64,000 bases of DNA, taken from the NCBI GenBank assembly GCA_977016875.1, contig CDRNST010000214.1, positions 2,790,001-2,854,000 of the forward strand, in the 5' to 3' direction. Of the stretch, positions 20,865 to 64,000 are shown in pieces; the first letter of the stretch is position 1; each line of letters opens with the position of its first letter. The notes under the pieces are model-generated. The model saw only the letters and a program-made list of their open reading frames with translations, did not search any database and was not told where the DNA came from. A program made the position numbers and the translations under genes. This DNA comes from Pavona decussata. Its lineage: Eukaryota.

Positions 20865-21797
20865 TTACACCGCGGTTTCTTCATCCTCTTCATCCCGTGC
20901 TACTGCACCCGCAGGGTTTCGTATCAGCGGTTTGCGCGGGAGTGTAGGCGTTGCACCCGGACTCTGTTCGTCTTCTGAATCTGTAACATACACATCCAGC
21001 AACTCCTTGAGAGGCCTCATGGCATGGGCATGGGGATGGTCAGCCTGGTCTCCAGGGATGTACTTGTTGGACCGCTCTCCATTGGTGTCCTCAATATAGA
21101 TGCGCTCTACCTGGGATTTTCTCTTCTTTTTCCGTCGGCAAAACACGATTAATATGAGGAGAAGAAACCAAAGAAACACGAATGATGAAACGCTGATGAC
21201 GATGATTTCTGTTGGAGTTAGATCCTCCTCTTTCGTTTCTTCTGTCTCGGTGGGGCATGTAAAAGCGTCGTAAGTCCCGAACAGCTTACACTCCGAGATG
21301 TTGAGCACTTTATGGCAGTAGAAGCCGAACAAACTTACCGAGAGCTTGTAGTGTGCAATGCTCCCAGAATCGGCCACATCGGCAAGGCAAGACTCGTAGT
21401 AAAACAGAGCTTGAGACACCAGGGCCTTACTGCAATGCTCTTGGAGCACTCCTTCGTAGAACTGTTTATAACACAACGTCAAAGCTAGCTCTTCAAGAGT
21501 CGTGTTTCTAAACGCCAGGCTGTAGTTTGCTAAGGGTGTCATGTGGACACCTGACGGGGCCCATCCTGGGGACTCACCGGAATGGACCAGGAACTGCACA
21601 GTGGTGACATTAACGGATGGGGGGTTCTGAAGGGCACTTGTTGTGTCAACCGGAAGGAGGGTGTAAAAGCGACCCACAGTTGTCAGTCCCATTCCTTCGT
21701 CAAGGGGCACACTTAGCACCAGTCCTTCACGGTAATCATCGAACTTTACGGTCATCGAGGCGTTGAGTTGTTCCAAGTTCTTGGCATACTGCCACAC
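20865..21797 (-). CDS. Giant gene terminal exon: C8-like domain, TM helix, cytoplasmic tail
   Basis: VWQYAK... continues the LDEFK LamG motif of the previous exon; IIVISVSSFVFLWFLLLILIVFC TM followed by RRKKKRK; ends EEDEETAV*. Confidence 0.92.
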   Translation of the reverse strand: MWQYAKNLEQLNASMTVKFDDYREGLVLSVPLDEGMGLTTVGRFYTLLPVDTTSALQNPPSVNVTTVQFLVHSGESPGWAPSGVHMTPLANYSLAFRNTTLEELALTLCYKQFYEGVLQEHCSKALVSQALFYYESCLADVADSGSIAHYKLSVSLFGFYCHKVLNISECKLFGTYDAFTCPTETEETKEEDLTPTEIIVISVSSFVFLWFLLLILIVFCRRKKKRKSQVERIYIEDTNGERSNKYIPGDQADHPHAHAMRPLKELLDVYVTDSEDEQSPGATPTLPRKPLIRNPAGAVARDEEDEETAV

Positions 21798-24700
21798 CTG
21801 TTGGAAATAAAGACAATTGGATTTTTTATGATATGCGCTTTCGAGAAATAGTCCTACAGAATATAGCTGTGCCTGAGAAATTGTGTTCATTCTTCTAATC
21901 GAACAAAATTATCTCCCTTCTTGGTCGCCAGAGGTACCAAATCGAGTTGCGTGGAAACACATTGTAAAGGAACGACCTGTAAGAAAAGGGTCAGGGGGGG
22001 GAGGGGGGAAGGGAAGTGTGTGGAATCAACGTTACTTCAGTTTGGGGCGACTTAACTTAAGTTTAGGGGTACCGCGATGGTGCGACTTAGCAAGTGATAC
22101 ACATGCCTGCATTCCATGGTTCGACGGTGGGTTTCTTAACAATGATAGTTACATGGTAGCAGTTCTGAACTTTACTTTATTTTTGTGTTGGCTCGGAGAT
22201 GATCAGTTAATAAGTGTCTGGTTTGCTAATCTTTCATAAAATTGTTGTTACCTTAAATTCGTCCAGGGCACCACGCATGTCGTACTTGCTGTCCATCATA
22301 TATTCTCGAATGTACCGTCCGAGAATCAGCAACCCGTCGAAAAAGAACTGCTTTCCTATCTTTACACCAAACGTCGTTGATTGTCGATGCTCGCCTTGTG
22401 CGTACGCAAACGCTTGCAGTCGGCCATCGATTCTTCTCCATGTCACTGCTAAATGGGTCCATACACCTTCGTGGATGTTAATACCAGTTACAAGTTTATT
22501 CTCATCCCAGTCAACTTGTATTCCATCTTTGCAAATGATAGCGAAGTTCCCACCACTTGTCGCAGCAGAGAAGATGGCGTGCATCCCGACGATCCGTTCT
22601 GTAGAGTGTTTCTGGCTCGACGAGCAAAGATGGGCAACACTCGATCCCTTGTTGACTAAGCATACCCATATTTCAATGGTAAACTCGTCGAGAACGGGTA
22701 AGCTCGAGTTACCACCGTACATGACAGCTGTGTTACTGGAAGAAAATTCCAACATGTAACCTGCGCCAGAAAAGCTACGCCAGGCGTTCTTTGTCGTTAA
22801 GAAACTGTCCTTTTCTCTTATTTGAAATTGGGTGCCGAGTTTAAGGTCAAGTGACTCTTGACTTAGTACACGCTGGTCTCTTGTTTCACTTGAAGCGTTT
22901 GCAGCTGGTTGTTGAGTGGGATCGATTAAATGCATCGCAAGGCTTCTGTCGTTGTACTCCTTTATCCACTTGCTCTCTTTCGCTCCACAAACGCCATCTG
23001 TATCGTTTCTCATTGATTGTGGCATTTGGATTGCAGTTCCAAGAGTACCATTGTAGGTGAGGACGTTCAGCTGAACTCCTTCGTACTCTAGGAAAGCTAC
23101 CTCTAGAATGGTACTTTTGACCCAACGGTACTTGATGTCAGCAACCTCTACCCATTCATCAGTCTTTTCAAGCTTAGAAGATTTGTTAGTCGCAAAGGTA
23201 ACTGTTCCACTTTCGAGTGTCTCGAGATCACTATAACGAACAAAGAGCATCACTTGAGAGGTACGTAGTGCGACTTCACTGATTCGTCGGCAGCTCATTC
23301 TGTTATTGCAAGGAACTATCAACACTTGTGCCACGACTGCAGATGAGTTGATGAGCTGGAAAGCACCGGGCGCTTCGAAGTGGAAGTTCACGCCCGTCAC
23401 ACTGGTAAAATGAGGATCGCCAAAGGTAAGGGCCATTTGGGTCTCAGAGGAGTCGACTACAGAGGATTCGTCTGCGATTGCGCAGTCTGTCCCCATCCAG
23501 CCATCCGTGCACCTACTGCAAGGTAATGCCGCGTTATCTTCATCAGATAGATTAGTAATATTACCTCTCCAGTGTGGCTCGCACTCACATGTACCATTAG
23601 TTACACTACACACACCATGCCCGTTACATGTTCCCCTCAGTCCACCCGGGCAAAGTTTTGAACAATCCTCACCCCAGTAGCCTGGTTGACACTTACAGGA
23701 GACACCATCTGTTGCGTTGACATCGGTGATGGCATAACCAAAGACGCATCGTGTCGTGCATCGCGAACCAATCCAGTATGGAAATCGCTGAAGCACAAAG
23801 TGATGACACAGTTCCTTTGCTGGCCACTCAGTTAGATCTACAGTGCTCTGGCAATAGTCGGCAAAAGTAACCACGGCGTAAACGGCAGAGTGTAAATTCA
23901 GTGACACTGAAATGTCGTGAAGGCAGACTTTGTAGTAAAACTGGGCCACCTGCAGAGTGAGTGCCTGGCATCTGGCGTACAAGGTTCCACTCAGAACAAG
24001 ACTGAAACAGAACGACTCTGCGTCTAGTTGCAGCCTTTCATTAACAAACGTAGTGGCCTTTAGTTTCAAGCGAGGAATGTCAGCATCGGAGAACGACCAA
24101 CGCGGTTCATGAAATTTGATTGTGAACAGGTCATTTTTCCCTTGTAAATCACGAATGACTCTTCCCTCGGCCTGGTTGAACTTCCAAAGGTGAAGCAAAT
24201 CTGGGTAAGTGTCAACTTGCACATTCAACCGCCAGTTGACTTTCACAAGGTCCGGATTCGTCCGTCTTTTCCATATGCGCATTTCGTCGATCTCGCCAAC
24301 AAAGGTCGATTCAGGAAGCAGATTGTCTGAGCCAGGTGAAGGCTGCCATTGCCCTAGCACCAAGACCCCCCCGTTTCCGAAAACACGGCTGTCAAGCTTG
24401 AATACGCGAACTCTGACTTCTCCGGTAGAGGTAAAAAAGTAGAAGTGAAGGATTCCAACCAGCCGTTTATAGACCAAGGTGATTTGATTCCACTGATCGA
24501 TCTCGAGTGTGAAACCAGTGTCATAAACAGATCCGTTGTAGATGATTGTCAATGTCACATTATCAACCACAGCAAAAATGCTCTGGCTTAAGTAGGAAAT
24601 GATGACCCCTCCCGATTTGTGCGCCTTTATGAGCAGTTCAACTGTTAGGATATCGAAGGTAGGAAAATTTATGGGCCCTGATCGAACTGAGTGATCCACG

Positions 24701-27700
24701 AAGAACAAGTTGAATCCGCCACCAGTGGGAACGCGGTGTTCTAGGTAGTGCAAGAACTTATACATGAATAAAGTCTGAGAGCCGTTAACTATTGAACTGG
24801 TCTTCAAAGCAGTGATGTATGACTCAAGACTGTTAGATTCGTTAAACGAATGATCTTTGCACGCCCCGAGAAGGCCTGTGGAGTCCTGGCAGAAGATAGC
24901 TGGCATATGAACCGTCACAGAAATGCTATGTCCAATAGTTAGCACAAATTTAATTCCTGTTGGACCGAAGATGTGAAAGGTGACCGTGGAAATGCGTACC
25001 ATGACAAAATGCACCGATAGCTGGGTTCTGTGATCAACTAGAACCACTTTTCCATTTAACCAAACAAGAGGAAAGATGGGAACCGTCGTTGAAAGCGTTG
25101 TGATCGGTGCACGGATGACAACATGGGTGTTATGGTAACCGAACGAGAATCCTGTGGTGCAAAGTGTGGTGTAAGTACCATCCGTTACACATGGAGTTTG
25201 TCGAAGCTGGATGACGAAGTTACGCTGAATGGATCGAAGAAGGTAGAATTCGCCAACTACTCTGTAAGTGAAACTCACACCGAAGAAAGTTGTGAAGTAG
25301 CCAAAACCACCAATCGATGCAACCACGATATTGGTTGATGATATGCCGGTAACAAGCTTAACAGCAAATTGACAGTTTGTTCCATTCCATCCAGGACTAC
25401 AACTGCTGCAGTTTCCATCACCTGCCCAATTGGCTTCACATTTGCATTCTCCTGTGGTTCTGTCACACACTCCGTGTCCTCCACATGTGTTCAAAAGACC
25501 GCCTAGACATAACTGGGAACAATCAGTGCCCCAGTATCCCTTGGTACAGACACAAAGGTTATGGTCACTGGGATCTGCCGCACCAAAGACGCATTTCACG
25601 TGACATTTGTCTCCTATCCATACAGGAAAGTGAACTCCAGGAAACTTGTTGCAAAGCGACTGAGCTGGCCACGTGGTGAGGTTCAGGCCAGCTTGGCAGT
25701 GGTCAGAGAACGTAATTACAGCTGTCAGGGCTGCACTGATATAACCAGTTGTTGCTATGTCTTTTAGGCAAACAAGGTAATGGAATTCGAGCTCAGCCTT
25801 CAAGCCACCATAGCAGAGGTCATAAAGTTGACTCTTGTAGAAGAGTTCGAAGCAGAATGACTTTGCGTTCTTTTCCAGTGTCTTATTGGGAAAATATATT
25901 TCAAATGGTTTGTCAGTGGATGTAAAATTTGCCTTCACGTCCGCATCAGAAAATATCCATGAAGGTTGTTCCCACGGTGATCTCGGCAGGTAGATGTGCT
26001 CGTCGGTTGCGAGATTTTTGATGACATCACTCTCGCCTTCGTTGATCTTCCAGAGTCCTGTGACGTCAGGATGCGTTGGGAGAACATTCATGCCCCAGTT
26101 TTGCTGTATGAGAGCTGGATTGAATGCTCGTTTCCACACACGGAATTCATCAATGATACCCACAAATGATGTTACTGTAAAGTTTTCGTTCTCTCCGGGC
26201 GAGAGCTCCCACTGGCCAAGAGAGAGGATACCACCAGGTAGGAACGGATTGGAGGATAACACATAGGACCTGCGCTGTACCTTACCCAAAAAGTCAAAGT
26301 GATAGAACTCCAGCACCAGAGTCTTGTGATGCCACACAAGCGATATGTGACTCCACTTCTTAATTGTGACCGGAACACTAGTATTTATGATGGTTTTTCC
26401 AAAATGGATAGTGATAGAGTTCTCAATCATTATTGCGAATGACTGTAGGACTGCGTACGAGAAAACCGTTCCACCTAATCCGTACGGTTTGACGAGGATT
26501 TCAATTGTGATATCTACGTTATTAATAAATGTTTTCGTGAGCGGCTTGGACGAGGCTCCTGTGTGGTTGAAGAGGAGGGCATAAATTCCTCCAGCTGGCA
26601 ATCGCCTCTCTTGGAAGTGTTGGTACTTCAAGATGATTAAGCTTTCTATCTCAAGCACAAGAGCGTGGATTCCAACCCCTGCATTCAAGACTGACTGAGA
26701 GACGTTTCCAGGAATGACACTTGTGTTGGAACTAACCGTAAGATCATTGTTGGGATCGCTGTCGCAAGAACCAAGCAGCCCCGTCGAGTTTTGGCAATAC
26801 GCTGGCTTCACATCCACCTTAAAACTCAAGTACCGTCCGTCGATGCGAATGTGTATGGCAAAATTGTCTTGCCAACTGATTTGATAGTGATTGTGTCCTG
26901 TGTACTTCAGATGAACGCCAAGTTTAATGTCTCCAAGACTGGTGATAAGTCCCGACAGAAGTATAAGCTTTCCGTTGACCCAGATAACTGGAGCTCCACC
27001 AGTGATGTAGGGGGCGTGGAATGAGATCACAGCAGAAAAAACTCGTATTCCTATCGCGTTAACACAAACGGACTGTAATCTGCAAGGCACGTGACGAACT
27101 TGGACTTGGAATGACAAGGAAGGCACATGTATAAGGTAATATTCGCCGACAGCCACAAGAGTGAAGCTGTAGCCATCAAAGGTAACGTAATGGCCTCCAA
27201 TAGATGATATCGCGATTGATACGTGTAACTTGCTAAGCGTAACAAGGGCAAGGGAGCAATCGGACCCAGTCCATCCCGAGGAGCACCTGCCACAGTCCAC
27301 TGTTCCGTTGTAATTAGCGTGACACTCGCAGTTGCCTGTCACGCTATCACACACTCCGTTGTTGTTACACGGTCTGTCCGCTCCGCCAGGGCAAGGGCTT
27401 GCGCACTCCGGACCCCAGTAACCACGGTAACATACGCATGTCTCAGAGTCAATCTTCTTACCGAACACGCATTTTTGATCGCAGTCTTTTCCGAACCAGA
27501 TAGGGAAATCCCTGCTAGGGAATTCATTGCAAAGTGGTTTGGCTGGCCACACAGTAAGATTGTTGATAGCCTGGCAATAGTCAGCGTACGCTATTATCAC
27601 TTCCATGGACATGTACAAGGAGTTGAAACTTGCAATTCTTCGCAGGCAGGATCTGAAGTAAAACGTAGCCACGCCTGGGCCCAAGCTGTTACATTTTGAA

Positions 27701-30700
27701 TACAGTGCCCCCATTAATAGTGTCCTATTGCAGAATAGTTCAGCTTCTACTTGGAACGTTTTGTTCTTAAAAGGGAAAGTTTGTTCTCGATCAAAAAATG
27801 GCATTTGCAACACCACGTCTGAATATCTCCATTCAGGCTCCTTCCATGGTTTGAAAGGAAGTTCCAGCCTCATTCCTGTCACTTTATCAACCGCGACGAT
27901 TCCTTCACCTTCGTTAAACTTCCATGCGTGCGCGATGTCTGGAGTGTCTACACTCACCGACCTGTTCCAGGTCTGAAGGATGAACGCTGGGTGAAAATAG
28001 CGCGTCCATATGCGAAGTTCATCTATAAAACCAGCAAAGAACTCAACAGGCTGAATTCCGGATCCATCTAGGGATGGCATCCAACCAGCCAAGGCGATAA
28101 TTCCTCCGGGAACAAAAACATCCACGCCAATGTTAATGTCGAGGCGATGTAACTGTCCACCAGATGCGAAGTAATAGAATTGTAACACCGTGGTCGATTT
28201 TCTGAACACGAGACTTAGCTGGTTCCATTCGTTAAGCTCCGCAGCGATATTTGTTGGGTAAACGTTGTCTCCGTAGTATATAGTGAACTTTCCTCCCTCG
28301 TTAGTGACAAAGAATGTCTTGCTTGTGGTATAAGAAAGGATGACGCCGTAACGGATTGTTTTGAACATGATTTTAATAGTTATGTCCGTGGACACGAACG
28401 CCTTGTAGATTACTCCAGAAACGACTGTTGTGTGTTCAAAGTAAAGCGCATAGCCAGCGTTTGCGTCTCGATATTCAACGACGTCTTTATACTTGTACTC
28501 GAATAAACTATGGCAAGCCTTCACTTTGAGTTTTGTGATAATAAGCGATGTTATAAGTTCTTGGGTTTTGTTCTTCCTACTGGATGCATTTTGCCCCAAG
28601 GAGGATGCAGAATCGTCTGCTAGGCGGAAACTATCTGGTTGGTTTGTTACGTTGAACGTAAAGCTTCCTTCAGAGCAGTTTGTATTCGGATGGTAAGACA
28701 CCAGTAATTCTAGCAAACCCTGGTTGCAAGAACCAAGTAGACCGATCGCTGATTTGCACACTGATCCTGCTGCGTTTGTGCTTAGGCTCAAGTACCGTCC
28801 CGTGACTCGTATTTTCAGGCGCAGTCCTGTGTATTTCACTTCCCACAAATATGCTGTGATTTTGGTGACTTCGAACCCGTAGGTTTGCAGAGTTATTTGA
28901 TGCACGTCAATATCAATGACTTTCCCGTTTAACCAAACTACCAGATTTCCACCAGACGTGTACGGTCCGTGCAAGACAACATTGTGCGAAGATATTTTCA
29001 GCGCAATGGAATTAATGCAGGTTAACTGTTGGAAGCACGACACCAGTCGAATCTGCACGACCACGGAAACATGTATGGAGTATATGAGGTAATATTCACC
29101 GGTGACGTGTAAGCTGTAGCTGATGCCACTTAGCGATGTAAAGTGCCCTCCAAGGGACACTGTGCCTACGCCTACTAAGACACTGCCAGGTGGCCATCGG
29201 GTGACTGCCGTTGAACAGTCCGTTCCAGCCCAACCAGTTGAACAGGTTGTGCAGTTTTCATTTCCTTGCCAGTTTAGCTCGCAGAGGCATTTTCCTGTCA
29301 CAACATCGCAGACTCCGTGGTTGTTACAAGCGCGTCCTTTCCCTCCAGGACAAATGCCCGAGCAGTTTTCTCCATAGAAACCTGGATCGCATACACAAAC
29401 ATCACTGTTGTTTGAGGCTTTGCCAAAAATGCACGGGATTGTACAGTTGGTTCCTATCCAGTTGGGGAAACGCTTTCCGGGGAACTTGTTACATAGCGAC
29501 TGAGCTGGCCAGTACGGCAAACCAAGAGTTTTCTGACAATAATCTGATATTGTTATCACGGCATCGATCGACTGAATTGTTATTCCAGTGTCCACTACCG
29601 CTTGTACGCAGGCGCGGAAGTAAAATTCTATTGTTACGTTGCCCAGCGATTGGCACGCAGCATGAATTGGCCCTTTAAATATGAACTCGAAACACACCTC
29701 TGTAGCGATGCCCTGCAAAGTCGCGTTGTTTTCGTTCGGATTCACTGCGACCACGGATGCGATGGGTGCATCAGAGAACACCCACTTCGGCTTTCCTAAA
29801 GGATATTTCGGGAATGACAACGTAACACCAGAAACAAGGTCTCTTACTATGGTATTTTCGCCTTCGTTGAATTTCCACAAATTCAAAAGTGACTGGGCAT
29901 TAGGTTGAACATTTGCTCTCCAACTTTGTTGAATCAGTGAATAGTCAAAAGGTATGCTCCATACACATATCTCATCTATTTGTCCGTAGAATACGTTAGT
30001 TGGCTGAACGCTGATAGAACCAGAGGCAGGTTGCCACATGCCGATGGCAAATGTCCCTTCAGCAAGGAAAGGGTCCACGCTCACACTGAACTTTCGTATC
30101 TGCACAAGCCCCGAGGAGAACGTAACAAAAACAAACAGTTCCAGCTTTGCACGAACGAATACAACAGAGATTTGATTCCACACATTAGCTTCAGTGGCAA
30201 TTCCGGTATCGTAGACATCTAACCCAATGACAACTTTAACTGTTACGTGGTTACTGATGTAAACTGTCACATTGGACGTGTACGAGATCAAAGTACCTCC
30301 ACAAACCTGAGGATCACATGATTTCACCAGCAGCTGGAAGGTTACTGTTTCACTCACAAAAAGGCGAACTAGGCCCTGTGTCACTACTGCCGTAAATCGA
30401 TAATAGAGACTGTAGATACCACCGTAAATAACCCTAGTCTCCTTGCGAACCTCTTCGTCGATGACAATAACTGATCGGGTTTCTTTTCTCACGGAGAGTT
30501 TTTCTTTGACAAATCTATTCACGTCACCACTAGATTCGGTTGCTCCTCCAACCCCTTCTAAAACTGTCGTTGGCCGGTTTCCAGAGAACACAGAACTGTC
30601 ATTTCCTTGGGTATCGTTTTGCCCCAGCTTAACTTCAGCACAAGAACCGCAAAGGCCATCAGCAATTTGGCAGAAGCTCAAAGATACCGTGGATTCCACA

Positions 30701-33700
30701 GTCAAGTATCGATCCGTGAAGACTGTTCGTATGGACAAATAGTTTGAAATAACTATCCTGTAAGCAGTGTTTGATATTGGCTGAATGCTCACATTGTTTG
30801 CCAGCATGTCTTTAGTGGGCTCTCCGCCAGCACTGATGTCTTCATTGTTGGCGTACACAAGTGGTTCTGAGTTACTCTCGTATGGGGCATGTACGCTGAC
30901 GGACAATCCATTGAACTTCACACCAATCGCATTTATACAAACGGAGCTAATCTCGCATGGTACTTGTCGAACTTGTGCTTGAAGGATGGAAGAATTAATC
31001 ATCATAAACTCTCCTACTGTTGTAAATGTGAAGAGTGCGCCATCAAAGCCAGTGACGTAGCCTCTCTCTGAAATGGTACATATTTTGAACGTATTGTTTG
31101 CAACGGATGGATCTCTTGTTGACATGGCGACAGAGCAGGAAGGACCTCTCCAACCCGGAGTGCATGTAGAGCAGTTTTGGTCTCCTTGCCAGTTGGGATG
31201 ACATCTGCATTTGCCGGTTGCAATATCACACTGGCCATTGCCGAAGCAAGGGTTATATGCACCTCCAGGGCACACATTGGAACAATTTACGCCCCAGTAT
31301 CCGCCATCGCACCTGCAAGCTCCATCAGAGTACCATCCGATTAGGCACTTCGTTGTACAGTTTATTCCAACCCAATCATCAAAGCGCCCTTGGGGTAGCA
31401 CATTGCAAAGATCTTTTCCAGGTAAAGTTGAGAGATTAAGGGCAGCTTGGCATTCTTCTCCGAAAGCAGTTGCTGTTGTTAAAGCTGAGTCGAGACTTCC
31501 CGAGGAAGACACTTCTTCGATACAAGCTTCGTAATAGAAATCAGATCCTCCCGTCGCGTTGGAACATTCGTCATAGAGAGGACCTTTGAGGAAAATCTCT
31601 GAACATAGCTTTTCAGTTGAATTGTCGACGACATCCTCAGAAGGCTCTGGTACTTCGAAGGCAGACGTTTCTATAAGTGCATCTGAAGGATACCAAACTG
31701 GACCTCTAAAGGGAGGGGCTGCAAGATTGAAGTCAAATGATCCTACGGTCGCACGGCAAACGAAGCCACGTCCTTCGTTGAACTTCCACAGAAGGGAAAT
31801 TCCTGGTGTGTTTATCTGCAAGTTGGTATTCCAGATTTCCTGAATCATAACAGAGTCAAATCGCTTGTTCCAAAAGCTTACTTCGTCCACCCAACCCACA
31901 AAGCCGGGTACCGAGAGAGAAACTGTGGTAATCTGCCAGAGAGCGATGGATAATGTACCACCCTCAGGAAATATCCCAACGCCAACATAAAAGACGCGTG
32001 TTTGAATGACGCCTATGGAATTGATCAAATAGATCTGTACGAGACCTGAAGTGCGCTTGTACACGAACGAGATGTGATTCCAAAGTTCAGTTTCTAGCAC
32101 GAGTTTGGTGTCAATGACAATGGGACCAAAGTAAATCCGGATCGTTCCATTCACTGTTATTGCAAATGTCTTATTGAGGGCGTATGAGATAATAGTTCCT
32201 CCGTAGAGTTTTGGGTCCTTTGCCTTGACAAAGAGCTGAACCGTGATGTAGTTACCGCTGAAGACATTGATTATGGGTGCCGACACGACTGACGTACCAT
32301 TGAAGAAAAGACAGCTTCCTCCTCCGTTAACGGATGGTGATTCACCAGAGATGTTTAAAATGGGACCAAAAGAGCTTTCATTACGCGGGATAGTCCACTT
32401 GTTCACGTAGGAAACCAGTATATCTTGAGTTACAGTTGTAATGTCAGCATAAGTATCTAAGATTCCCCCTCCAGTAGGGCAGTTTGAGGGGGCCACGCTT
32501 AATCCAGGATCTCTGCATCTTCCGAGCAGGCCGCAAGCTTCTCGACACAGCCATCTGTCCATAGTGATGGAGACATCAAAGTGTATTGCGAGGGAGTTTA
32601 TAACAAAATGGAAGCCTCCTGGACCCGTTACGGTATAACTGTTAAGTGACATCCGTTGAAACACAAACCCTGAAACTCCCAACGAAATAAGAGTTTTGTA
32701 ATTTATAGGAAAACCATTCATTGTAATCAACACTTGACCCACGATTCCGATGCTACTGTGAACTGCGATAACATTTTCCCTTACACGTACAATTGCACAT
32801 CTTAAACGCACATATCTACCGATTCTCACTTGGCGGAACTGGATACTGAGTCCATAGCGAGACAGGGCCAGCACGTTGAATTCGCCTGCTACGTTTACAT
32901 TGATTTTAACTCCGTCCAAAGTCACATAATAACCAGTTCCAAAGACCGATGTTATCGGGAGCTCTTCTGTTGGTGATGTTATAGCAACTGAACAATCTTT
33001 GCTTACGTATCCAGGGGTGCACTTACTGCAGTCAAGTGCTCCTCGCCATTTTCTTTTACATCTGCATGTTCCCATACCACTTAAGCAACGTCCATGCCCA
33101 CTGCAGACATTCACGGGCCCACCAGGGCAGGCTCCGTCACACCGCGGTCCCCAGAAACCTCGGTCACACTTGCATCTTCCGTACAGTCCTCGAATTTGGT
33201 ATCCAAAGGTACATGGAATGTCACAGCTCACGCCAATCCAGTTAATGAGTCTTGAACTTTGGAAGACTTCATACCTATTCACACAAAGGAGTATAAAATT
33301 ACTACAGACCACCATTTCCACGTTCAATCACAGGCACGCCCGTGTTCGTAAGGAATGTTCCGAATCTACCAGGATTTCTTTCAAATTGTGAACCGGATGA
33401 ATGACTCAGATAACTTCGATGTTTACTTTTACCCAGTGGATAGATTTCATAACCATTTTCCCCTTATCCCTCAGCCCCACCCCTTTGGAACGCACGACGA
33501 CGTTTCCTGAATATGCAAGCAATATGGTATTTCAGTAAAATTCGAACGTCCGGAAATGGAAGGCTACAAACTGGTACGGATTTTCTTATTTTTATAAAGG
33601 TACTCTATTACAAACATACTCAGATGTATACTCAATTCATGAAAGTTGTACATACAATTTCCTGTGTATTTTAATCTTTGGCGAATTACTTAAGGCGCCA

Positions 33701-36700
33701 TCAAATGCAAATTAATTTTGCAAACTTGAGCGGGCCAGTAGTGAGCGAAAGCAACAATGGTTGGAGCAATAGTTGCAAAACATGTTGGTAAACTATTGGC
33801 AAGACTCAATCTATCCGCGCCATGTTTTTCAACTACAGTTTTAAATGTTCACACACTCAAACTTGGCGTGTTAATGTTTGTCAGATATGCGTTGTTTACT
33901 GTTATTGCCAAATTATTCTATGCTATTAATAGTAGCCTGGTCCTTAATGCACATTTGGCATGTGAAAACACGAATTCCCTAATGTTTTGGAGTTTGTTAA
34001 CTTTTAAAATTGTGGTGGGAGCGCGTTTAAAAAATACCATTACTATGAAAAAAGCAAAATACCTGCACATCTGTCTCGCCGGCCAAATAGCCAAATTTAG
34101 TTGTAATTGGCACGTGTCTGCAAAGGCTACAACAACGCTGACTCCCAGTGACACCTGGCGACTTGACGCAATCACCCTTAAACACGCCCTAACATAGAAA
34201 GATATCGTTCCCCCGCCCAGAGCTCCACAAGCGTAACTTGGGGACGACGTTTTGATGTGTTCATCGCACCAAGTTTCTGCTTTGACTCTGAGTTCAGTCG
34301 TATGGAAGGTGATTTCAGTGGTTACGGGAAGAACCTTGATATTAGCGTAACTGAAGATCCACCGGGGTGCTCTGCGTACGGATGGTATGTACAAATGAAC
34401 GCCACTGACCAAATCGTGCACAACGTTACTCTGTCCTTCATTGAACTTCCACAAAATAGCGATGTGGCGTGCGGTGGAAATCACGTTTATTCTCCAACTA
34501 GTCTTAACATCATGTAAACTGAATTCACGATTCCAGAAGCGAACTTCATCGATCAATCCAAAGAAACCCGGCAAACGATCGCCTTCCTCGGTGATGGTTT
34601 CCAGAGCTGGAATCCATTGCCCTATTGAGATGGTACTGCCTCCTTTTTTAAATACTCCAGGAATCATAGTGCGGGTAGCTTGACGAACAACACCAATGGA
34701 ATTAATGTGGTAGAAATAGATTGCGCCGGTGATGTTATGGTACACGAGGGTGACTTGGTTCCAGGTGTCGATCTCAGGAGTAAGCCCAGTGTCCCAGATC
34801 TCCAACCCAATTCGCACTTTTAAGGTCACCTCAATAAACACCGTCAATGTTATGGCTTTGCTGTAAGTGAAAAGGACCCCTCCAGGATTTGACCTAGAAA
34901 TCACGTTAAACAACATTTCAGTTGTGATAACAGGGGCATTTAACACATCAGGCATAAGATCCGTAGACACGCCAACTCGCTTGAACTTTAAGGCGTATTC
35001 GGCGCCAGTTACGACTCTTTCTTCTTTGTAAATTCCATAGTTGTACACGAAAAGGCTATCAGCAATGGAAACTCGCCACGTTTCCTCCAAAGACCCACCA
35101 GCAGTCACATTGAAGTCGTTCTCTCTGTTTCCGTCGCAATTTCCGCACAATGCGTTTGTCCCATCACACAAGGACTGATTAGTATGACCAGCGATCACCA
35201 GCCCTCTTCCTACTACACGCAGTTGGAATTTGAGATCTTTACTCAGGCTACTTAGTACATAAGTAGTTGAGGACGTCTGCTCCAGCGACATTTCACTGGA
35301 AATGTAGATCTTTGTTGAACTGAATTCTGCTATGCTTCCATTCACCCAAACAACAGGCCGGTCGGTTTCTTCATAAGGGGCGTGGAACGTGAGCTTCCAT
35401 CCAGAAATGAAAGAGAATGCTATTGCGTTTATACAACGTGTTTCGCCATTGTGACACGGCACTTGCCTGAACTGTCCATTAAAGCGTGCACTTCTCACAA
35501 ACCAAAACTCCCCAACTCCAAAGAAATTGAAGTGAGCACTGTCAAAGTTGGTGAAATGTCCTCCGAGGAAAGCGGAGCACGTTGGTAACTGTGTTGTCGC
35601 AACAGCTACAGAGCAATCAGATCCGGTCCAACCAGGAGTGCAGTTACTACAGTCGCCATTTCCTCGCCAGTTAAGATCACATTCACACATTCCGCTGTTG
35701 ACGTCACAATTGCCATGGTCGTTACAAGGGGAGTTTCCGCCTCCTGGACACTCACTGGCGCAGTCTTTGCCCCAGTATCCTCGTGTGCAAACACACAAGC
35801 TCGCGTTACGTGCGTCGGGATTTCCGAATATACACTTGAAGGAACAGTCAGTACCGATCCATTGCCGAGGAAGTCGTTTAGGAAATTGTTGACACAGAAG
35901 TTGAGCAGGCCAAGAGGGAAGGTGAAGCACAGTCTGACAGAAGTCTGCATAAGCTGACAATACAATATAAGCGGTGTCTAAGGAACCAGAGGAATGGATG
36001 TCAGCAAGACATGCCTGATAGTAAAACTGAGGAACAGTCGTGGCTAGTTGCTGTCCGCATAGAGTTTGCAGTCTTGTGTCGTAGATAAGTTCGAAGCACA
36101 GCTTGCTGGCAAGCGACCCGAAAGTGGCATTTCTATATTGGACTACCGCACTTGTGACTACCGTTGGAAACACATCTCGGATATAAGAAAAGTGCCACAC
36201 AGGTCGACTGCTGATCACTTGAGGCAGGTAGATATTTGATGAGCTAGCTATACGATTAATCACCTCTCTGCCAACCCCCTCGTCAAACTGCCACAGGGCA
36301 CTTAAAGTTGGTTGGTTGCCTGTGACAACAATAACGAAACTCTGACGGATGAGCACAGTGTCCAGAACAAAAGTCCAGATTCGCAGTTCATCTATGCTTC
36401 CAAAGAATGGCTGCAATGGTACACCTGTGATGTGCTGCTGTGTTATGTGCCAGCGACCAAGCCAAAGAGTACCACCAGAGGTGAAGAGGTTAGGTCCGAT
36501 GTAGATCTGTTTGGTGGAGAGATCGCCTTGTGAATCGAGCTGATAGTAGGCTAGGACTCCTGAAATAAAAAGGTAGACATCGTTGTAAGGTTTGTTGCTT
36601 TGGCCTGCGTGTAAAAATTGCAGCTTTCGTTTATCTGTAGTTTTTTGAAAATGCAAGTAAAATAAACAAAAACAAAAAAATGATAAACGTTCAAAGTAAC

Positions 36701-39700
36701 AACTACTGGCAAAAAAATGTTATATCCCCAATACTTAAGTCTAGTACTACAGTGTAAATGTACACTTTATAATGTGCAACTAATACTCAAACAAACTTCT
36801 AAATAATGTTAACAGATCTGTCTCCGTGGATTGGCACTAGCCGAGGACTGCATTTGGCTACGGCAGGTTTAACTGTCCAACCTTTCAGTGGGTATCGCAG
36901 TTTCTTCTTCCGCCGTTGGCTACTAGGAAGAATTGCCTCTCCTCTTGTATTATAGTGGAGCTACGTTCTAAGGTTCGAACACTGCGATCCTCTCCATCAA
37001 TTGAACTGATTTCATAAACAACAGCGCAAATAATTTAATCATGCATTGAAGGGTTTTCATTGGTAACAAATTTACAGGAGAAAAATGTTTGTTGACTCCC
37101 CTAAACAAATTCGCCAGTTGTAAGTCCCAGTGTGTTTGCCTTAATGCTATCGTCATTTGGCATTCCCCAACTATCAGTTTGGACAATCGTGATTTCACTA
37201 AAGAGAAGTGAAAATTCAAACTGTCGGACCTAACAAAGGAACAAGTACAAACAAGACACGTAACAAATTCAAGCCAGCTTCACTTACCTGTAGCCGAACT
37301 GTATGCAATGGACACTTGTACCCAGGTTGCCAAAGGAAGTGTAATTCCTACGTCATACACAGTTCTGCCCACGTGTACTTTAACCTTGACATCATTCACA
37401 ACGGCGAAGGTAAATTCTTTGGCATAACATAAGATCGTACCTCCATAAGCATGGACTCTGACAAACAGCTGAAGTGTAAAGTCTTTTCCTTTGGTGAAAG
37501 AGGTGTGTAGTGTACCACTGGATGCCACTGTACCATTAAACTTCAATGCATATCCATTCGAGGTTATTTCTCTTCGCTCTTTGTAGCTGGTGTAGTCGAA
37601 TAAAAACAGTGAGTCAATGACGGAAACTTTCCATTGGGAGCTGAAGATGTCGATGATTACCCGTTGTGAAATACTCTGCCCCCAGAACACTGTACCCGTG
37701 CTGTTTGTAAAATCGTTTTCGATGTTTGAATCACAGGAGGAACAAAGGCCCGAAGCTACGGTGCAGAATTGAGAAACAGAAGTCATCTCGAATGATAAAT
37801 ACTTTTGCGAGGCTTCCACTCTAAGTGTTATCGTTCCAGCCGCTTTATTTACAATTTCATACCCCTGTGGAGATGTTTTGTGAAACCTAAAGTCATTTTC
37901 CAAGTCAAAAGTGGTGGTGTCCGTTAGCCTACTGTTCAACCACACCAATGCTTTTCCACTACCATCGAAAGAGGCTCTTATCACCAGACTCGTGGAACCG
38001 GTTTTTACTGCCAACGACGAAATACAAAACGAACCACTAATGCAAGGGATTTGACGGATCTGCGCGGTGAAGTGATTGCTCTTTAGTAGGTAGAATTCTC
38101 CGTAAGTTCCAAAGGTGTATCCAACGCCATCAAATGTTGTGTAATGTGCTGCACCAAAACCTTGACAAGTAAAGTTGTCTGGGCGGCTTCTATTTCCTCC
38201 GAGTGCGAGAGAACAATCAGCTCCAACCCATCCTGGACTGCACAAGCTGCAATCGCTGGTGACATTTGACGGAACTGGGCAGTTACATTTTCCAGTGATG
38301 TTATTACATGACGCTTGGCCGCTACAAGGTGAATAGTATCCGCCAGGACATTCTTGCGTGCAGTTACCACCGAAAAACCCTTTCATGCAGACGCAACTGT
38401 CACGTTCTGGAAGGCCAAATCTACAGAGTTTCGCACAGCTCTGCCCGTACCATTGTGGGAAGTTAACAGCAGATACATTGTCACATAGGCTCTGAGCATA
38501 CCACGACGATTGTTGGTGGAACAATTGATAGAAATCCGAAACAGCCATTACTGACCAATATGCATAACTATCATGATTGCCTCGCGTTACAGATGCCACA
38601 CACGACATGTGATAGAGCCAGAGAGTTTCGGTGTTTAGCATGGTGTACTGTGCTCTTAACGAAGAGTGGAAGATAAGGTCGTAGCATTTCAGCTCTACAT
38701 TCATCCAGTTGCTGCCAAATCTGAAGCTGTACGCTTTAACAACATCAAATGAAAATTGCTGAATTTGAGCCGTCGAGAACAACCATGTTGGTCCATGCCA
38801 AACGCCCGATTGGAATGTTATGTGGGCGCTCGAAACGCAGTCATACGCCACTGTACCGTAGCCTTCATTGAACTTCCAAAGACTCGCAAGATTTTGAACT
38901 CGTGTGGTGCAGTCCAAGTTTCTTTTCCAGTTGGCCGAAATCGATAACGGGTCTAGCTTTTGGTTCCATATTCGCAGCTCGTCAATTTGTCCAATGAATC
39001 CTTCTTTGAGTGGTATTCCTAGTCCAGAAGGAGGGGGCAAGCAATAGCCTAGGGCCAAGATCCCTCCAGGTTGAAACACGTTCACACTACTCGTGATTGG
39101 AAAGTTCCGACTGTGAGCACGACCAGCGTCGTCTATGTGGTAGAATTGAAGGATGCGCGTTGATTTAGACCAAACGAGAGCAATTTGATTCCATTTGTGT
39201 ATTTCAATTACAGCCAAGGTGTCCAGAATGACGTCTTCGTACCGTAGTTTTATCTTCCCAGATTCCAAAACTATGGCAAACATCTTTGTGGTCGTGTACG
39301 AGATGAGAGTACCGTTTTGGCTCTCTGCACGAACCATAAATTCGATAGTGATGTCTGAAGCGGAGAAACTGAAGATGTCCCCAGTTTGGGCGCCAGCGTT
39401 GTTGAAATACAGAGCGTAGCCTCCACCGTAAAGATCTCTATGCTCATGGTAGATATTGATGTCATAGAGGAACAAACTGTCTCTAGCCCACACAAGCCAG
39501 GATGGACCATAGAATTTATGCAAGTACGACTGCGTGACATTTTGCGCTGTAACTACTTCACCATTTCTGTTGGTTAAATCGTCAAATGGGTTGACATTGC
39601 AGCTACCCCAGAGCCCCTGAGTGGTCTGACAATACGTTTGGTTGTCAACACGCAAATGAATATCGAGGTATCGGTTGTACAACCGAACAATAAGCTGAAC

Positions 39701-42700
39701 ACCATAAGTCGAGGAGAGAACGAACTGCAGGCGCGAGGTGCGTTTAAACGTAAACTTGTGATTTGCTGGTCCAAAGTTAAATTCGAGAGAATATTTTATT
39801 TTACCGTTGACATAGATAACAGGTTCGTCTTGGGTTGCAAACCTTGCATGAACTAGTAGAGTATGTTGTTCGACTCTCACTGCTACAGCGTTGAAGCATG
39901 AACTTGATGAAAAGCATGTCACCATGCGAGCTTGGACTTCAAAGGACGAGGACAGTATCAAGTGATATTCACCATTTCCCAAAAACCTGTATCCAGTTCC
40001 GTCGAGCGTAACAACGTAGCCATGCCCAAATGCCGCTGCAGTACGGTTATTTGGACTTTGAACGATGACAGAGCAATCAGCACCGTGCCAACCTGGTGAG
40101 CATGTAGTACAGTTCACGTCGCCTCGCCAGTTAGGATCACATAAGCACAAACCTGTAGTCTTGTTGCAGAGGCCGTTGTTAGAACATGGCGCTGATGGCC
40201 CACCCGGACAGTCATGCTGACATGCTAAGCCCCAGTGTCCATCGCGGCATGAGCATGTGTAGGATTCGCTTGACACCTGGAGTGGGAAGACAGGTATATT
40301 AACTATTGGGGACCTCAGTGCATACCATATTTATCCCACAACATATAACTATACGGATGAACAGAAATTTCAAGAGCTGGTGTTTATGCTCTGAATTTTT
40401 AATCTATTCCACGGCCATCGCAATCACGTTTGTAGGCCCTCGTCACTGCAGTGTTTCATAGCATAGGTATGACAAAGTGGACTGGTGACCTGGGCTTGAG
40501 ATTTTCCAGTCTTCTACGGAATCTTCGGACTTTTTTAACACTTTTCGGAAAAAAAAGGAAAAAAAAAAAAACAAGACCAGAAACGTTAAAAGAAAAACCA
40601 TGCTGGTCTGCAGCCTCATATGCACTTAATCTTAAATTCGACAATACCTAACGGAACCTAACGAGTTTGATTGTGATTTCATAATCACTTTAATACAGCG
40701 ATTTTCACTTGACCTTGAAATGACTCCGTGCGAACAAAAAACTGTGCGTTTAACTTTCCTTTTGGTTTGTTTCCATCTCGATCTCGATATTCCTCTTGGA
40801 CGTTACTCAGTTTTGGCAATCCTGTGATCTGTCTTGATCAATCTAACAATCTGTTTTATATTAGAGTGTTCTTTAGAGAGAAAACGTACGCATGCAGTTT
40901 TAATTCGATTTGTTCATTTTACCTATCTTGTGGCGGATGAAACAAAACGCGAACAGTCACGGAATTTGCCAGAAACCATTTTTCAAGGTCAAACGAAAAT
41001 CGCGCTGTTAATTGTTGGTTCCTGCTTTCAACTTTAGAGTGGTTTTCAGACGTTAGCTTTGTTGAACAAAGTAACTACTCTGGCTGATCATATTAGTCGT
41101 AAATAACACAATGAACCAGTCAAGATATGAAGTGAAACACGACACGGAAAAATGCGTGCGAGCAAGTCCCGATAGATTTTGGTTGTACTTATCAGGAGCA
41201 AATATTTTGAAAAGTATAATGAAGCTAACTCAAAGCAAATGCAAATAAGATATGGCTAAAGGCAATTTAGGCAAGGTTAACCTCGTGACAATGCAGCACT
41301 GGTCAGTGGTAGATTCCCTTGAAAACATGCGATGTTTGGGGTGGCCCTTGGGGTTTTCAGAGGCTGATCAAGTATCGTGTTTTGCTGACCAGCAAGTCAC
41401 GTTGCTGGTCTTTGCGGTTCATGCAAGCCAGTTTGAGATCTTTAATCTCCACATTCGATTGACAATCGCTCTCTGAAATAAAACAGTTCCAACACTAACA
41501 CCAAGATACTCCCACTTACATTGTTAGCCGGAGCTGAGCTGTCCGTGCATCTCATAGAGTGAATCAGTGATGAGTCCACCACCGCTGCCTTTCTCTCATT
41601 GGATACTGGAAAAGCTAGAACCCAGGCTATCGGGTTGGAGTCTTGCAGTCTGTAAGAACAAAGAAAGAAAAGGTAGCTACAGTCTTAAAGGTGAAATTAT
41701 ATTAAAAACTTTATCTTATTACAAAGTAAACGAGGACAACACTTTTTTTTTTTTTTTGCTCGCAATTATTTCAACTATATGGTGTGCAATTACTTTAGTG
41801 ATAAAGTTGGAGATTGCTGTTCATTTATTGTACCATTAGGTTGTTTAATTTACAGAAAAGCACGCACGTATACAAAGGTTTGTGAAAACGGGTAAAGTCA
41901 AAGTTCAAGACGCATTTGTATACCATCTTTGATTACCGATGGATAATTAAAGTAGATTACAAACGTGTTTCCAAAGTTTTAGTTCTCATATAAATGGAAC
42001 ATTAGGAATTTATCTTCTGCTCTCATCATCTTATTGGCTTTTAAAAAAAGTGTAGGTGAAAACTTGGAAATTAGCTAAATTGAATTATTCTCGCACCTCA
42101 CTCTGAAAACCTTGTCGTGCCTCCCAGGAACAAACTTGCTCGGTTGCCCATAATTTTCAGTTGCTAATGGTATTAGGTTACTAGTTCCATTTTCCGATCC
42201 GCTTAATTTACGAACAAATCCAGCCAGTCCACCAGGAACGATCTCTAGATAAGGTCTGGCGAAGAAATTGTCTGGTCCCACTTCTAGGTACACGTTGTGA
42301 GGATTTTTGTTGTTGTATCCAAACCAGGCGAACACCGCGCCTTGATCAGTGCTGTTTATGCAGTTGACGATTGGTTCAATTGGTATTTTTCCCCCCTCCC
42401 CGTCAAGTTCATCACGGTATTGAGCATGCGCAGTGACACAGTCAATGTCACATCTCTCTCCTACGTGCGCGCCGTCGCAGGAAGTACAGGTTGGTAATCC
42501 CCAACCGAACACACAACGGTCGCAGGCTGATCCATTCCAGTAACCTAAGTTGGAGTCATAGTGACACGTGCAGATATCTTTGTTTTGCCCTGTTGCGTCG
42601 CCATGGACACAATAAACGTTGCAACCGACTGGCCAGCCGATGTAGTTTGTAATGCATTTATCACATTCAGATCCTGTAAACTGCGGTAAACACCGTTCGC

Positions 42701-45700
42701 ATGAACGCCCGTCAAAACCATGGTTACACTTACAGGCTGGTAAGTTGCCTTGTAACGTACAGTACCCTCTGTTGCTACACATAGGCTGACCAGGGCAAAC
42801 GAGTTTACTGCAGTCATCGCCGTCAAAGCCTTGATTACAAAGGCACACAGCCTTTGCGGGGGATCCCTGCTGAACACAGGCGCCTCGTCCGCTACAGTCT
42901 GGTTCACCTGGGCAGTTTAAGGTTTCGCATGTCTGGCCCTTCCATCCTGCATCACATTGGCAAACATCCTGGCTGCAAGTCCCCTGTCGAGAGCATTCGA
43001 TATCACAAGCTAATCCACTGAAACACGGGTCACACTTGCAAACCACACTGTTCGGAGGATGTTCATGGCCGTTTATACACGGAAATTCACAGGCAGGACC
43101 CATTGTATTACTAGTACAGTTCACGCAGATCGGTGGATCAACCCCTCCATAACAGGTTCCAAGTGCATTGCAATCTGGCACTCCGGGGCAATCGGGAATA
43201 TCACAGCCAGCTCCTTTCCATCCGTTAAAGCAATCACACTCTTGTGTAACAAGTAGACAGACGCCATGTCCAGTGCAGTCGACACCTATGCCTGGACAAC
43301 CCACTGTTTCACACTTAGGTCCTCTCCATCCGCTATCACAGACACACTTACCCTGGTCACACTTGCCGTGACCGTTACATTCCGTACCACAGTCCACTCC
43401 AGTGTGGCAGCTGTCACAGCTGCAAGTATCCCCAGAGGGTGACTTCACGACTGTGCCATTAATGCAGCGTTGCTCACAGCCTTCTCCCATGTAACCAGCA
43501 TCACAAGATGCACAAACCGGAGGATCGTGAGAGATTCCATCGCACAAACCATGGCCACTACAGTTCCCACCTCCTGCACATTTAGGTATATGGCAGCCTC
43601 TTCCAGACCAACCAGGTCGGCAGTAACAGATGCCAAGAGCAGCGATGCAAGACCCATGTCCTGAGCAGTCAGAACCCCATCCAGGGCAACCCTTGGTGTT
43701 ACAAGTGGGACCCCGCCACCCTTCAAAACCACAATCACAGGCATCATTTGTGCAGTTACCACGTCCAGAACATTCTACTTCACACGTTACTCCACTGTAG
43801 CATCCATCACACCGGCAGAGATAAGAACCATCGGTTGTTTTCTGGGGCGTACCATGTTCACATTTGGTCTCGCAAGCTCGACCCATCCATCCCTTGTCGC
43901 AAGTACAGAACGAGGTAGACCCAATGGTGTCGCATTTCCCATGTCCACTGCACATTGGCGTACCAGGGCAAGCTGGCTGTTCACATCCCCGTCCAGCCCA
44001 ACCTGGGTTGCAGTCACAAGTCTGAGTAGCGCTGTTACAGGTGCCACGCCCAGAACAGTCTGTATTGAAGAGACCAGGACAGCCTTTCTTTTCACAGTAT
44101 TTTCCACGCCATCCTTCAAAACCACAGTAGCAATGACCCTTAGAGCAAGTAGCGTTAGGCCTATTGGAACAGAACACATCACATCCCAGTCCAATGTAAC
44201 AGGGGTCACAATCACACACGGTTGGATCGTCTTTGTTTTGAGTACCGTTCACGCAAGGCAGTTCACAGGCTCTTCCTGCCCACCCTGCCTGGCAGTTGCC
44301 GCAGTAAGGGACCTCTGCTGGGATGCACTGGCCCCGGTTGTTGCAGTCTGGGTCACCCGGACAGTCCGTTTTCTCACAGCCAATACCTAAACCAAGAAAA
44401 AGTTTAAATCAACTAGGTTTTCCTAAAATTTCTACAGCCTGCAATAACGTTTAATTTTGCAGCCTCGCCACTTCCACGAGATACCAAAACATTTCATTAT
44501 TCGTAGTTTAGTTTACTGTTTCTCTTTAGTATTTGATAGCAAGTGACATGTGGCAAGTGACGGCGTGAAGATAGTAAACCAACCCCAATTGCATTTTAGG
44601 AAGTTCCTATACCCTTCCTACCGTATTAGCCAAATTAACTGTAAGCCAACAAATCTTGTCAAATTAAGTAAAGTATGTTCGACTACAAAAACAAGAACGC
44701 ATAGACCTACATTAAGAGATAACTTGACACAAAAATGACTGTAGAATGACTAGAGAACGTCCAAAAAAAATTTCTTCAAAATCATGAAATCTTTTTGTAA
44801 CATTTGAGTCTATGAGTAAAGTCAAAAATGTAACTATCATTAAGCAGAACGTTCCCATGATACCGTTACTCCTTACAGTGAGATAGTAGTTAAATATCAA
44901 GTAATTACACTAACCACTCCAGCCTGGATCGCAGATACACGTTTGTGATGCAGTCAGACATTGTCCATGTCCCGAGCAATCTTTCTTGTATCCAGGGCAC
45001 CCTTTCTTCTCGCAGAAGGGTCCTCTCCAACCCTGAAATCCGCAGTCACATTTTCCATCCACGCACAACGAACTATGATTTGAGCACAGCATGTCACAGG
45101 CAGCACCATTGTAGCATAGATCACACACGCAAATATGGTTACTAGTTGGAGTCCCAAATTGGCATGGAAGCTCACAAGCAACACCCATCCATCCTTTGGA
45201 GCAATTACACTTGGGTGCTTCATTGTCATTGGTTGGTGCAATACACGAGCCACGCCCATTACAGTCAGGCGTACCGGGGCAGTCTGGGATGTCACACGCA
45301 GGACCAGACCACGCAGGATCACACGTGCACTTTAAGTTGGCTTTGTTGCACGTGCCATGATTGCTGCAGTCCTTAGGCCACCCGGGACAGCTTGGGATTG
45401 CACACACGGCGCCTTTGTATCCTTGAAGTTTGTCACAGACGCACGCGTCGTTGACGCATGTGCCGTGCAATGAGCACTCCAGGTTACACCCAGATCCAGA
45501 GAAACACGGATGGCAGATACAGCCTGAAGCGTTGCCATAGTTAGTTCCATTCACGCAGGGAAGCTCACACATTTCCCCTGCCCACTGAGGCTCGCAGTTA
45601 CACCTGTCATTAAGGAGAATTTAGTTACTAATATTACTTTGCAAACCCGAAAAGCGTCAACACTTTCACATTCTCGACCAAATAGATGAGAGCTCAAACT

Positions 45701-63676: not shown

Positions 63677-63879
63677 CTAAAACGCAATTTTGAAAAAGAT
63701 AATCACTCGGTAAAGAAAAGACCTCAAGTTTGATATACTTTTTCTCTACACGCAAAACTTTTAAAGGTTTAAAAGTGCTGGTTTAATACTGGCCTTGCCA
63801 ATTAAGCCCCAAAACAGTCCCTGGAAGTTGTTACTCAACACTAGTTTAACATTCTTGTAATTAAATTGGAAAGAAGAAA

Positions 63880-63958
63880 TAGATTGATTGATTGATTGAT
63901 TGATCGGTTGATCAATTGATCGTTCATTTGGTTGGTCGATGAATTGATGTATTGATTG
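63880..63958. repeat. (GATT)n tetranucleotide microsatellite, degenerate
   Basis: gattgattgattgattgattgat... Confidence 0.8.
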
Positions 63959-64000
63959 AAAAAAAAATGTAATTTTGTTCACGTAGACAAGGAGCACCAA

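Follow-up and report, generated by a model that had tools for sequence, protein, structure and literature searches.

We analyzed a stretch of 64,000 nucleotides from Pavona decussata (GenBank assembly GCA_977016875.1, contig CDRNST010000214.1, positions 2,790,001 to 2,854,000 of the forward strand), here referred to as the window. From the sequence, its content is best explained as most of a single-copy stony-coral gene on the minus strand, the product of which would be a giant membrane protein of type I and belong to the VWDE-like family. The predicted protein carries nine VWD domains, and the motif GDPH is confined to the last, membrane-proximal one (VWD9). Sequence and structural model slightly favour a functional cut at the Asp-Pro bond of this motif, which would divide the protein into a giant outer chain and a membrane chain of 698 amino acids (aa), held together only by the first beta-strand (beta1) of VWD9 within its sheet. 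GDPH cuts are well known from vertebrate mucins, FCGBP and the RGM proteins, and their purpose is debated. The motif and its chemistry are already textbook matter. What is new here is that one VWD in nine carries the motif, that this pattern is strictly conserved and that a disulfide staple is lost in parallel. This single, little-studied invertebrate family contains its own natural contrast, with eight motif-free VWDs versus one GDPH-bearing VWD.

The reverse complement of window positions 23410-23421 reads GGC GAT CCT CAT and translates into G-D-P-H. These are residues 3303-3306 of an uninterrupted open exon of 3697 codons (22237-33327, minus strand), here named the big exon, and the predicted scissile bond is Asp3304|Pro3305 in big-exon numbering. 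The residues across the predicted cut site are ...ALTFGDPHFTSVTG.... A previous annotation made from the letters of the window without database searches, here called the sequence-only reading, had quoted the motif strings of all nine VWDs and had assigned GDPH to the membrane-proximal one only. All nine strings were found on the minus strand, and the restriction to VWD9 was confirmed in the motif columns of a MAFFT alignment. The strings of VWD1 (39998-40030) and VWD2 (38126-38158) are located in exon 37283-40330 and that of VWD3 (35538-35570) in exon 33921-36719. Those of VWD4 (32911-32943), VWD5 (31039-31071), VWD6 (29125-29157), VWD7 (27172-27204), VWD8 (25279-25311) and VWD9 (23392-23427) are all located in the big exon. 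From VWD1 to VWD9 the GDPH-equivalent columns read GHGY, GAAH, LGGH, GTGY, ERGY, LGGH, IGGH, GFGY and GDPH, respectively, and Asp-Pro is missing from these columns in VWD4 to VWD8.

Searching, folding and counting were done separately for each exon. Each of the nine segments, scanned singly, matched the Pfam family VWD (PF00094, curated cutoff 22.9 bits), with scores ranging from 59.2 bits (VWD7) to 20.7 bits (VWD8). VWD9 itself (big-exon residues 3299-3450, window 22978..23433, minus strand), which is supported by Pfam, Foldseek and VIA-align, scored 23.9 bits, and VWD4 (21.6 bits) and VWD8 were just under the cutoff. By Pfam score VWD9 is therefore among the least canonical of the nine domains.

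Two word searches returned 49 relatives of the protein. The VWDs in these relatives were located with a profile built from the nine window VWDs, and each was assigned to the most similar window VWD. When the segment from VWD9 to the following laminin G domain (LamG9) was used alone as a word-search query, three short matches were obtained. The sequence-only reading had proposed to examine whether GDPH is conserved only in the last VWD of orthologues. This was the case: every one of the 31 orthologous last VWDs carries the motif, and the remaining 136 VWDs of these proteins are all without it. The 31 last VWDs share between 33% and 94% domain identity with that of the window, and the lowest identity between any pair is 27%. 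Across these 31 full domains 17 of 146 columns are invariant, and GDPH is the sole run of four. At VWD positions 3 to 8 of the orthologues, the GDPH-equivalent columns hold between 5 and 16 different tetrapeptides. The conservation is specific to the motif rather than general to the domain, since VWD9 is among the least canonical by Pfam score. Judged by the sequences, the presence of GDPH in VWD9 is more than chance, since the motif falls precisely on the canonical column and all 31 orthologues retain it unchanged. Full-length-like homologues also carry nine VWDs. The cluster of an orthologue with 78% identity includes proteins of Oculina patagonica, and a fragment with 63% identity is derived from Pocillopora meandrina.

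For the structural analysis, residues 3223-3503 were modelled with AlphaFold2 from an alignment of 20 rows. The mean predicted local distance difference test score (pLDDT) was 72.9, with values above 90 in the VWD core. According to DSSP, beta1 covers model residues 75-80, GDPH residues 81-84 and beta2 residues 82-86, which places the motif in the beta1-beta2 turn of the model. Beta1 (QMALTF, window 23422..23439, minus strand) would form the C-terminal end of the outer chain after a cut. The top Foldseek matches were the VWDs of MUC2, VWF and MUC5AC (E-values of 8.5e-9, obtained for MUC2, and up), followed by RGMB and FCGBP. With VIA-align, Z-scores of 17.6 were reached to the VWDs of VWF and MUC5AC (156-164 residues aligned), of 13.9 to domain D10 of FCGBP and of up to 14.5 to RGMB. 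A search of solved structures with the profile returned EGF modules as the only matches.

The post-cleavage chain 8qci_B of FCGBP D10, which starts at P4081, aligned from model residue 83, that is the coral Pro (Z 13.9). The post-cleavage RGMB chains 4bq8_C, 4ui2_D and 4bq6_F, starting at P169, aligned from the same residue (Z 12.6-13.1). Because the cleaved crystal chains begin at the coral Pro, the coral motif is, in the model, in register with the known cut sites. In FCGBP D10 the cut lies between beta1 and beta2; a change of the Asp or the His abolishes cleavage and a change of Gln4094 leads to partial cleavage (PMC10880436). Both the Asp and the His needed there are present at the coral site and invariant in the orthologues. 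In fold, motif and register, as far as sequence and model can tell, VWD9 agrees with the GDPH-cleaving VWDs (the class of MUC2 D4, MUC5AC, FCGBP, RGM and BMPER). A complex prediction for the two would-be fragments (23416-23661 and 22888-23415, minus strand) gave a score of 0.01, which speaks neither for nor against binding.

VWD9 does not belong to the disulfide-bridged subtype of these domains. To describe this, 176 VWDs (the nine of the window and those of the orthologues) were scored for two Cys, one located four residues before the Gly of the motif position in beta1 and the other in the GLCG near the domain end. Both Cys were found in 40 domains and neither in 109; the beta1 Cys alone was found in one. 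A GLCG Cys without its beta1 counterpart was found in 26 domains, each of them a GDPH-bearing VWD9. Because the two Cys covary across the 176 domains, with VWD9 as the sole systematic exception, they behave as a disulfide pair. In the window, VWD9 has an Ala at the canonical beta1 position and retains an orphan Cys3447 in GVCG (22987..22989, minus strand), the counterpart of which would pair with the beta1 Cys in other VWDs according to the Cys covariation. Only the distant orthologue P0091 retains the beta1 Cys (CVAFGDPH).

The segment between LamG8 and VWD9 contains 18 Cys with a spacing identical to that of the segments before VWD6, VWD7 and VWD8. As this pattern equals that of cassettes 6-8, there is no spare upstream Cys to bridge the cut. 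Additionally, the number of Cys in the extracellular part of the stub is odd in many orthologues. The closest relatives of the window sequence carry an extra Cys in LamG9 (IICK), which may have become the partner of the orphan GLCG Cys.

Without a disulfide that fixes beta1 to the domain, cleavage could fragment the protein (PMC10880436). We infer from the Cys pattern that the two products would not be covalently linked, as reported for MUC4 and unlike in FCGBP, RGM and SUSD2. With the beta1 disulfide missing, it becomes more plausible that a cut would truly split the chain in two. GDPH and the absence of the staple recur together in most orthologous last VWDs: all 31 carry GDPH, and all but one are without the staple Cys. 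At the sequence level this suggests that selection acted on the separation of the chains and makes domain stabilisation alone less likely.

The proposed course of events is as follows. The Asp3304-Pro3305 bond in the beta1-beta2 turn would be broken during secretion, either by attack of the Asp side chain on its own carbonyl with assistance of the His, as in FCGBP, MUC2 and RGM, or alternatively by a protease acting at the GDPH site, as proposed for MUC4. The predicted products are an outer chain ending with ...ALTFGD and a membrane chain of 698 aa starting with PHFTSVTG.... Beta1, if it stays in the VWD9 sheet, would be the sole link between them. The result would be a MUC4-like two-chain receptor, from which the outer chain could leave when it is pulled or when the domain loosens. 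The stub would remain anchored, and its tail could bind scaffold proteins of the PDZ type. The motif with its register and conservation, the lacking staple and the build of the stub can be read from sequence and model. Cleavage, non-covalent association and release of the outer chain are all steps that we infer.

The sequence-only reading had listed GDPH as the acid-promoted self-cleavage site of MUC4, MUC2, MUC5AC and FCGBP. This holds for MUC2, for which acid promotion is documented, but MUC5AC and FCGBP are reported to be cleaved in the endoplasmic reticulum at about neutral pH (PMC10880436). A serine protease has been put forward for MUC4 and likewise for SUSD2 (PMC6696261). A pH sensitivity of the coral site is pure conjecture.

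The membrane stub from Pro3305 onwards consists of 389 aa of the big exon and 309 aa of the last exon, and the sum of the two exon counts (698 aa, 585 of them extracellular) matches the earlier estimate of about 700 aa. Its anatomy is maintained among the orthologues. The distance from GDPH to the transmembrane (TM) helix is conserved with about 550-585 aa, and 16 of the 19 listed GDPH-bearing proteins with a TM helix retain a tail ending with E-[ST]-x-[VLMF]. In the window the protein ends with ETAV (20868-20879, minus strand), which resembles a class I PDZ ligand. The outer fragment, previously put at more than 9,000 aa, is probably much larger, since repeat exons of one kind extend upstream beyond the window over 50 kb or more and appear to continue the same gene.

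Several points weigh against a cut in VWD9. The scission of the Asp-Pro bond is a prediction from sequence and model, and the pLDDT of the model is just 56-73 near beta1. The coral counterpart of FCGBP Q4094, which is hydrogen-bonded to the Asp there, counted from the sequence as 14 residues past the Asp, is a Glu (NFHFEAPG). This difference is not decisive, as cleavage of the Q4094E variant of FCGBP is partial (PMC10880436). The motif is no guarantee of a cut either, since recombinant GDPH-bearing MUC2 was left uncleaved in one host (PMC10880436). Even after a cut, the fragments could remain joined through the orphan Cys or some other non-canonical disulfide, by analogy with SUSD2 (PMC6696261). 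Among the GDPH-bearing relatives the named ones are limited to two, Oculina patagonica and Pocillopora meandrina. Furthermore, no GDPH was found in any VWD of Lytechinus pictus LOC135154217, Branchiostoma belcheri Bbelb_427260, a Lamellibrachia protein and several other distant homologues. Since the orthologous last VWD lacks the motif in these distant taxa, the VWDE-like family can work without a cut.

These points leave room for other explanations. The cut may occur and serve the stabilisation of the VWD9 fold as in FCGBP D10, with the two chains kept together by the beta-sheet or by a non-canonical disulfide and without release of the ectodomain. Cleavage of FCGBP D10 raised the resistance to protease and heat, and its new ends form many hydrogen bonds (PMC10880436). 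The SUSD2 fragments stay on the surface of the cell (PMC6696261), and the orphan Cys of VWD9 would be available for a bond. However, the canonical staple is absent in exactly the VWD that carries the motif, spare upstream Cys are lacking and the Cys count of the extracellular stub is odd in many orthologues. Moreover MUC4, the closest membrane-bound analogue, releases its outer chain after the cut (PMC6696261). We regard a purely stabilising cut as possible but rather unlikely.

Alternatively, GDPH could be kept for the geometry of the turn or for a binding surface of VWD9, with the chain intact in vivo. The intact GDPH of recombinant MUC2 D4 (PMC10880436), the Glu in place of the Gln that aids FCGBP cleavage and the distant homologues working without the motif would all fit such a role. 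Against it, the turn tolerates the 5-16 tetrapeptides found in the other VWDs as well as SGAH, GYFH or FNSY in the last VWDs of bilaterians. Because so many tetrapeptides occupy this turn, its geometry has no need for Asp-Pro. Additionally, the Asp and the His on which the cleavage chemistry depends do not vary. An uncut chain seems improbable to us. That the motif is a product of chance or an inherited leftover free of selection, for which nothing speaks except that GDPH is an ancestral-looking VWD consensus, is hardly tenable in view of its invariance in 31 of 31 domains down to 27% pairwise identity, while 129 of the 146 columns vary.

With regard to known systems, the predicted cut in VWD9 resembles most that of MUC4 (sialomucin complex, with alpha and beta subunits). 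MUC4 shares with the coral protein its type I membrane topology and the very large size of its outer part. A single GDPH in the membrane-side VWD of MUC4 splits the precursor into an outer chain and a TM chain, and the outer chain is releasable (PMC6696261, PMC10880436). It differs in that its cut is ascribed to a serine protease. The coral protein for its part has eight motif-free VWDs and cassettes with LamG and teneurin-type EGF domains, and is devoid of NIDO, AMOP and mucin repeats. In the Pfam scan of the window exons no match to NIDO, AMOP, SEA or GPS was obtained. As NIDO and AMOP are lacking, the coral protein is, judged by its domains, MUC4-like in its working and not a member of the MUC4/SUSD2 family.

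FCGBP D10 (PDB 8qci) shares with VWD9 the VWD fold (Z 13.9, root-mean-square deviation 2.8, 147 residues) and the location of GDPH in the beta1-beta2 turn. However, FCGBP is secreted, carries GDPH in 11 of its 13 VWDs, has C8-TIL-E partner domains and bridges every cut by the beta1 disulfide (PMC10880436). In the coral protein, which is anchored in the membrane, just one of the nine VWDs carries GDPH, and the staple is lacking, as are C8 and TIL. RGMA, RGMB and RGMC resemble VWD9 in having a lone VWD-like domain with FGDPH and an autocatalytic cut near the membrane anchor. A weak match of Pfam RGM_C to VWD9 (E 0.072) was below threshold, and a precomputed RGM_C match is present on the orthologue P0023. 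In contrast to the coral protein, the RGMs are small and anchored by glycosylphosphatidylinositol, and their fragments are disulfide-linked.

Vertebrate VWDE and the invertebrate VWDE-like proteins (Vwde, PF26129) are comparable in that orthologues of the coral protein bear precomputed matches to Vwde beside VWD and EGF domains. The layout of nine cassettes is found as well in Lytechinus pictus LOC135154217 and in Branchiostoma belcheri; these distant homologues differ by the lack of GDPH. SEA and GAIN modules (MUC1, adhesion GPCRs) follow a similar logic, with a self-cut inside a folded module next to the membrane and one beta-strand that holds the outer chain until it is pulled. They differ from VWD9 in fold and chemistry, and the coral protein would keep an extracellular stub of about 585 aa after the cut. 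No paper was found in the literature searched that links GDPH with the VWDE family or with cnidarians. A candidate from the literature (PMC4890752, PMC3748352) was set aside as a neurexin-related protein.

The history of the last VWD was analyzed with a maximum-likelihood tree of 43 VWDs, which has long branches and no resolution in its deeper forks. The sea-urchin and amphioxus proteins and the homologue P0030 have nine VWD matches each. The last VWDs of the coral, of a relative with 52% identity, of sea urchin, of amphioxus and of P0030 formed one clade (support 92/92, 94% of bootstrap trees). Because the last VWDs form a clade of their own, the membrane-side VWD is an old separate module. 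The sequence-only reading had spoken of a loss of the motif in eight copies. This direction is not supported by the tree, as the last-VWD clade is separate and its bilaterian members lack GDPH, so that a gain or a retention in the coral-side lineage fits equally well. What the sequences do indicate is that the motif is strictly maintained in one module within the coral-side lineage. In the tree, several cassette positions also group by position across phyla, and the nine-cassette layout is common to the coral and the deuterostomes. Based on these sequences the nine-cassette array looks older than the split between cnidarians and bilaterians.

If the cut takes place, the coral would display a protein of well over 9,000 aa in the form of an outer chain that can be detached from a stub whose tail resembles a PDZ ligand. 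Such a chain would bear on the shedding of surface, mucus or skeletal matrix components in corals, and the motif-free bilaterian homologues offer a ready comparison. A VWDE-like entry is present in a table of skeletal proteins of Stylophora pistillata (PMC7115838). If this entry is an orthologue, the outer chain would reach the skeletal matrix.

A further, highly speculative outcome can be derived by analogy with the inter-alpha-inhibitor heavy chains, which form an ester cross-link at a C-terminal Asp. Their DPHF site is located in a VWD-like sandwich (PMC10880436). The cut in VWD9 might likewise leave an activated C-terminal Asp on the outer chain, which could become esterified to a glycan of the surface matrix, the mucus or the skeletal organic matrix, although we consider this very unlikely. 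If true, the cut would be more than a point of release, as a covalent bond would fix the outer chain to the matrix. The stub set free could use its tail to bind PDZ proteins, and the orphan Cys exposed beside beta1 would be a second reactive handle.

The base composition of the window and its long open frames, which are split by closed stretches, indicate a eukaryotic intron-bearing gene. The segment from VWD9 to LamG9 had one match only in the 602-Mb genome. Pfam matches on the window exons comprised repeated cassettes of teneurin-type EGF, VWD and Laminin_G_3 domains; VWD and EGF_Teneurin were confirmed in this way. Precomputed matches of Pfam Vwde (PF26129) are present on orthologues (97% identity and lower) beside VWD and EGF domains, which would place the protein in the VWDE-like family. 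In its predicted order, the protein would consist of Gly-rich repeats, arrays of teneurin-type EGFs, nine cassettes, one TM helix and a 90-aa tail ending with ETAV. Each cassette is composed of a Cys-rich linker, EGF, VWD and LamG.

The exons and domains described here are on the minus strand. Cassettes 1-3, assigned by Pfam and alignment, are distributed over two exons (37283-40330 and 33921-36719; 33921..40330 in total) and include VWD1 (GHGY), VWD2 (GAAH) and VWD3 (LGGH). Cassettes 4-8 together with the Cys-rich linker and the teneurin-type EGFs of cassette 9 take up the part of the big exon before VWD9 (23428..33327), again according to Pfam and alignment. The Laminin_G_3 (concanavalin-like) domain of cassette 9 is located in the stub (22249..22710; Pfam, best stretch 3540-3693). 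The big exon ends with ...DEFKV (22249-22251), and the coding part of the last exon (309 aa, 20868..21794) starts with WQYAKNL, the junction being placed by alignment to orthologues. The last exon spans 20868-21908 and contains a Cys-rich juxtamembrane module, the TM helix (IIVISVSSFVFLWFLLLILIVFC, 21138-21206) and the cytoplasmic tail of 90 aa.

Exons upstream of the cassettes (42078..63782), identified by Pfam and open frames, appear to continue the same minus-strand gene, which would run past the end of the window. Those between 42 and 51 kb code for arrays of teneurin-type EGFs with one DSL match. This DSL module (Delta/Serrate ligand, PF01414; window 49351-50922, minus strand) scored 29.2 bits versus a cutoff of 24.2 and is a Notch-ligand-like element in the giant ectodomain. 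The exons between 51 and 63.8 kb code for Gly-rich repeats of about 400 aa. Upstream of the window, exons with such repeats persist over 50 kb or more (contig 2854001-2904000), and one open frame there comprises 2544 aa. No Pfam match was obtained for the Gly-rich repeats in the window (51-63.8 kb) and in these 50 kb, and a profile of the nine window VWDs detected no further VWD in the latter. From the sequence, the upstream exons appear to belong to the same gene, and the whole protein may exceed 15,000 aa. The pattern of the repeats (GSGAGHGGEGG...GGGSGGSI...) resembles a parallel beta-helix. Finally, an intron at the window end (63800-64000 and about 324-864 bases beyond) contains a tetranucleotide-type tandem repeat that translates into SINQSINQ..., and 80-base stretches similar to it occur at no fewer than 80 places of the genome.

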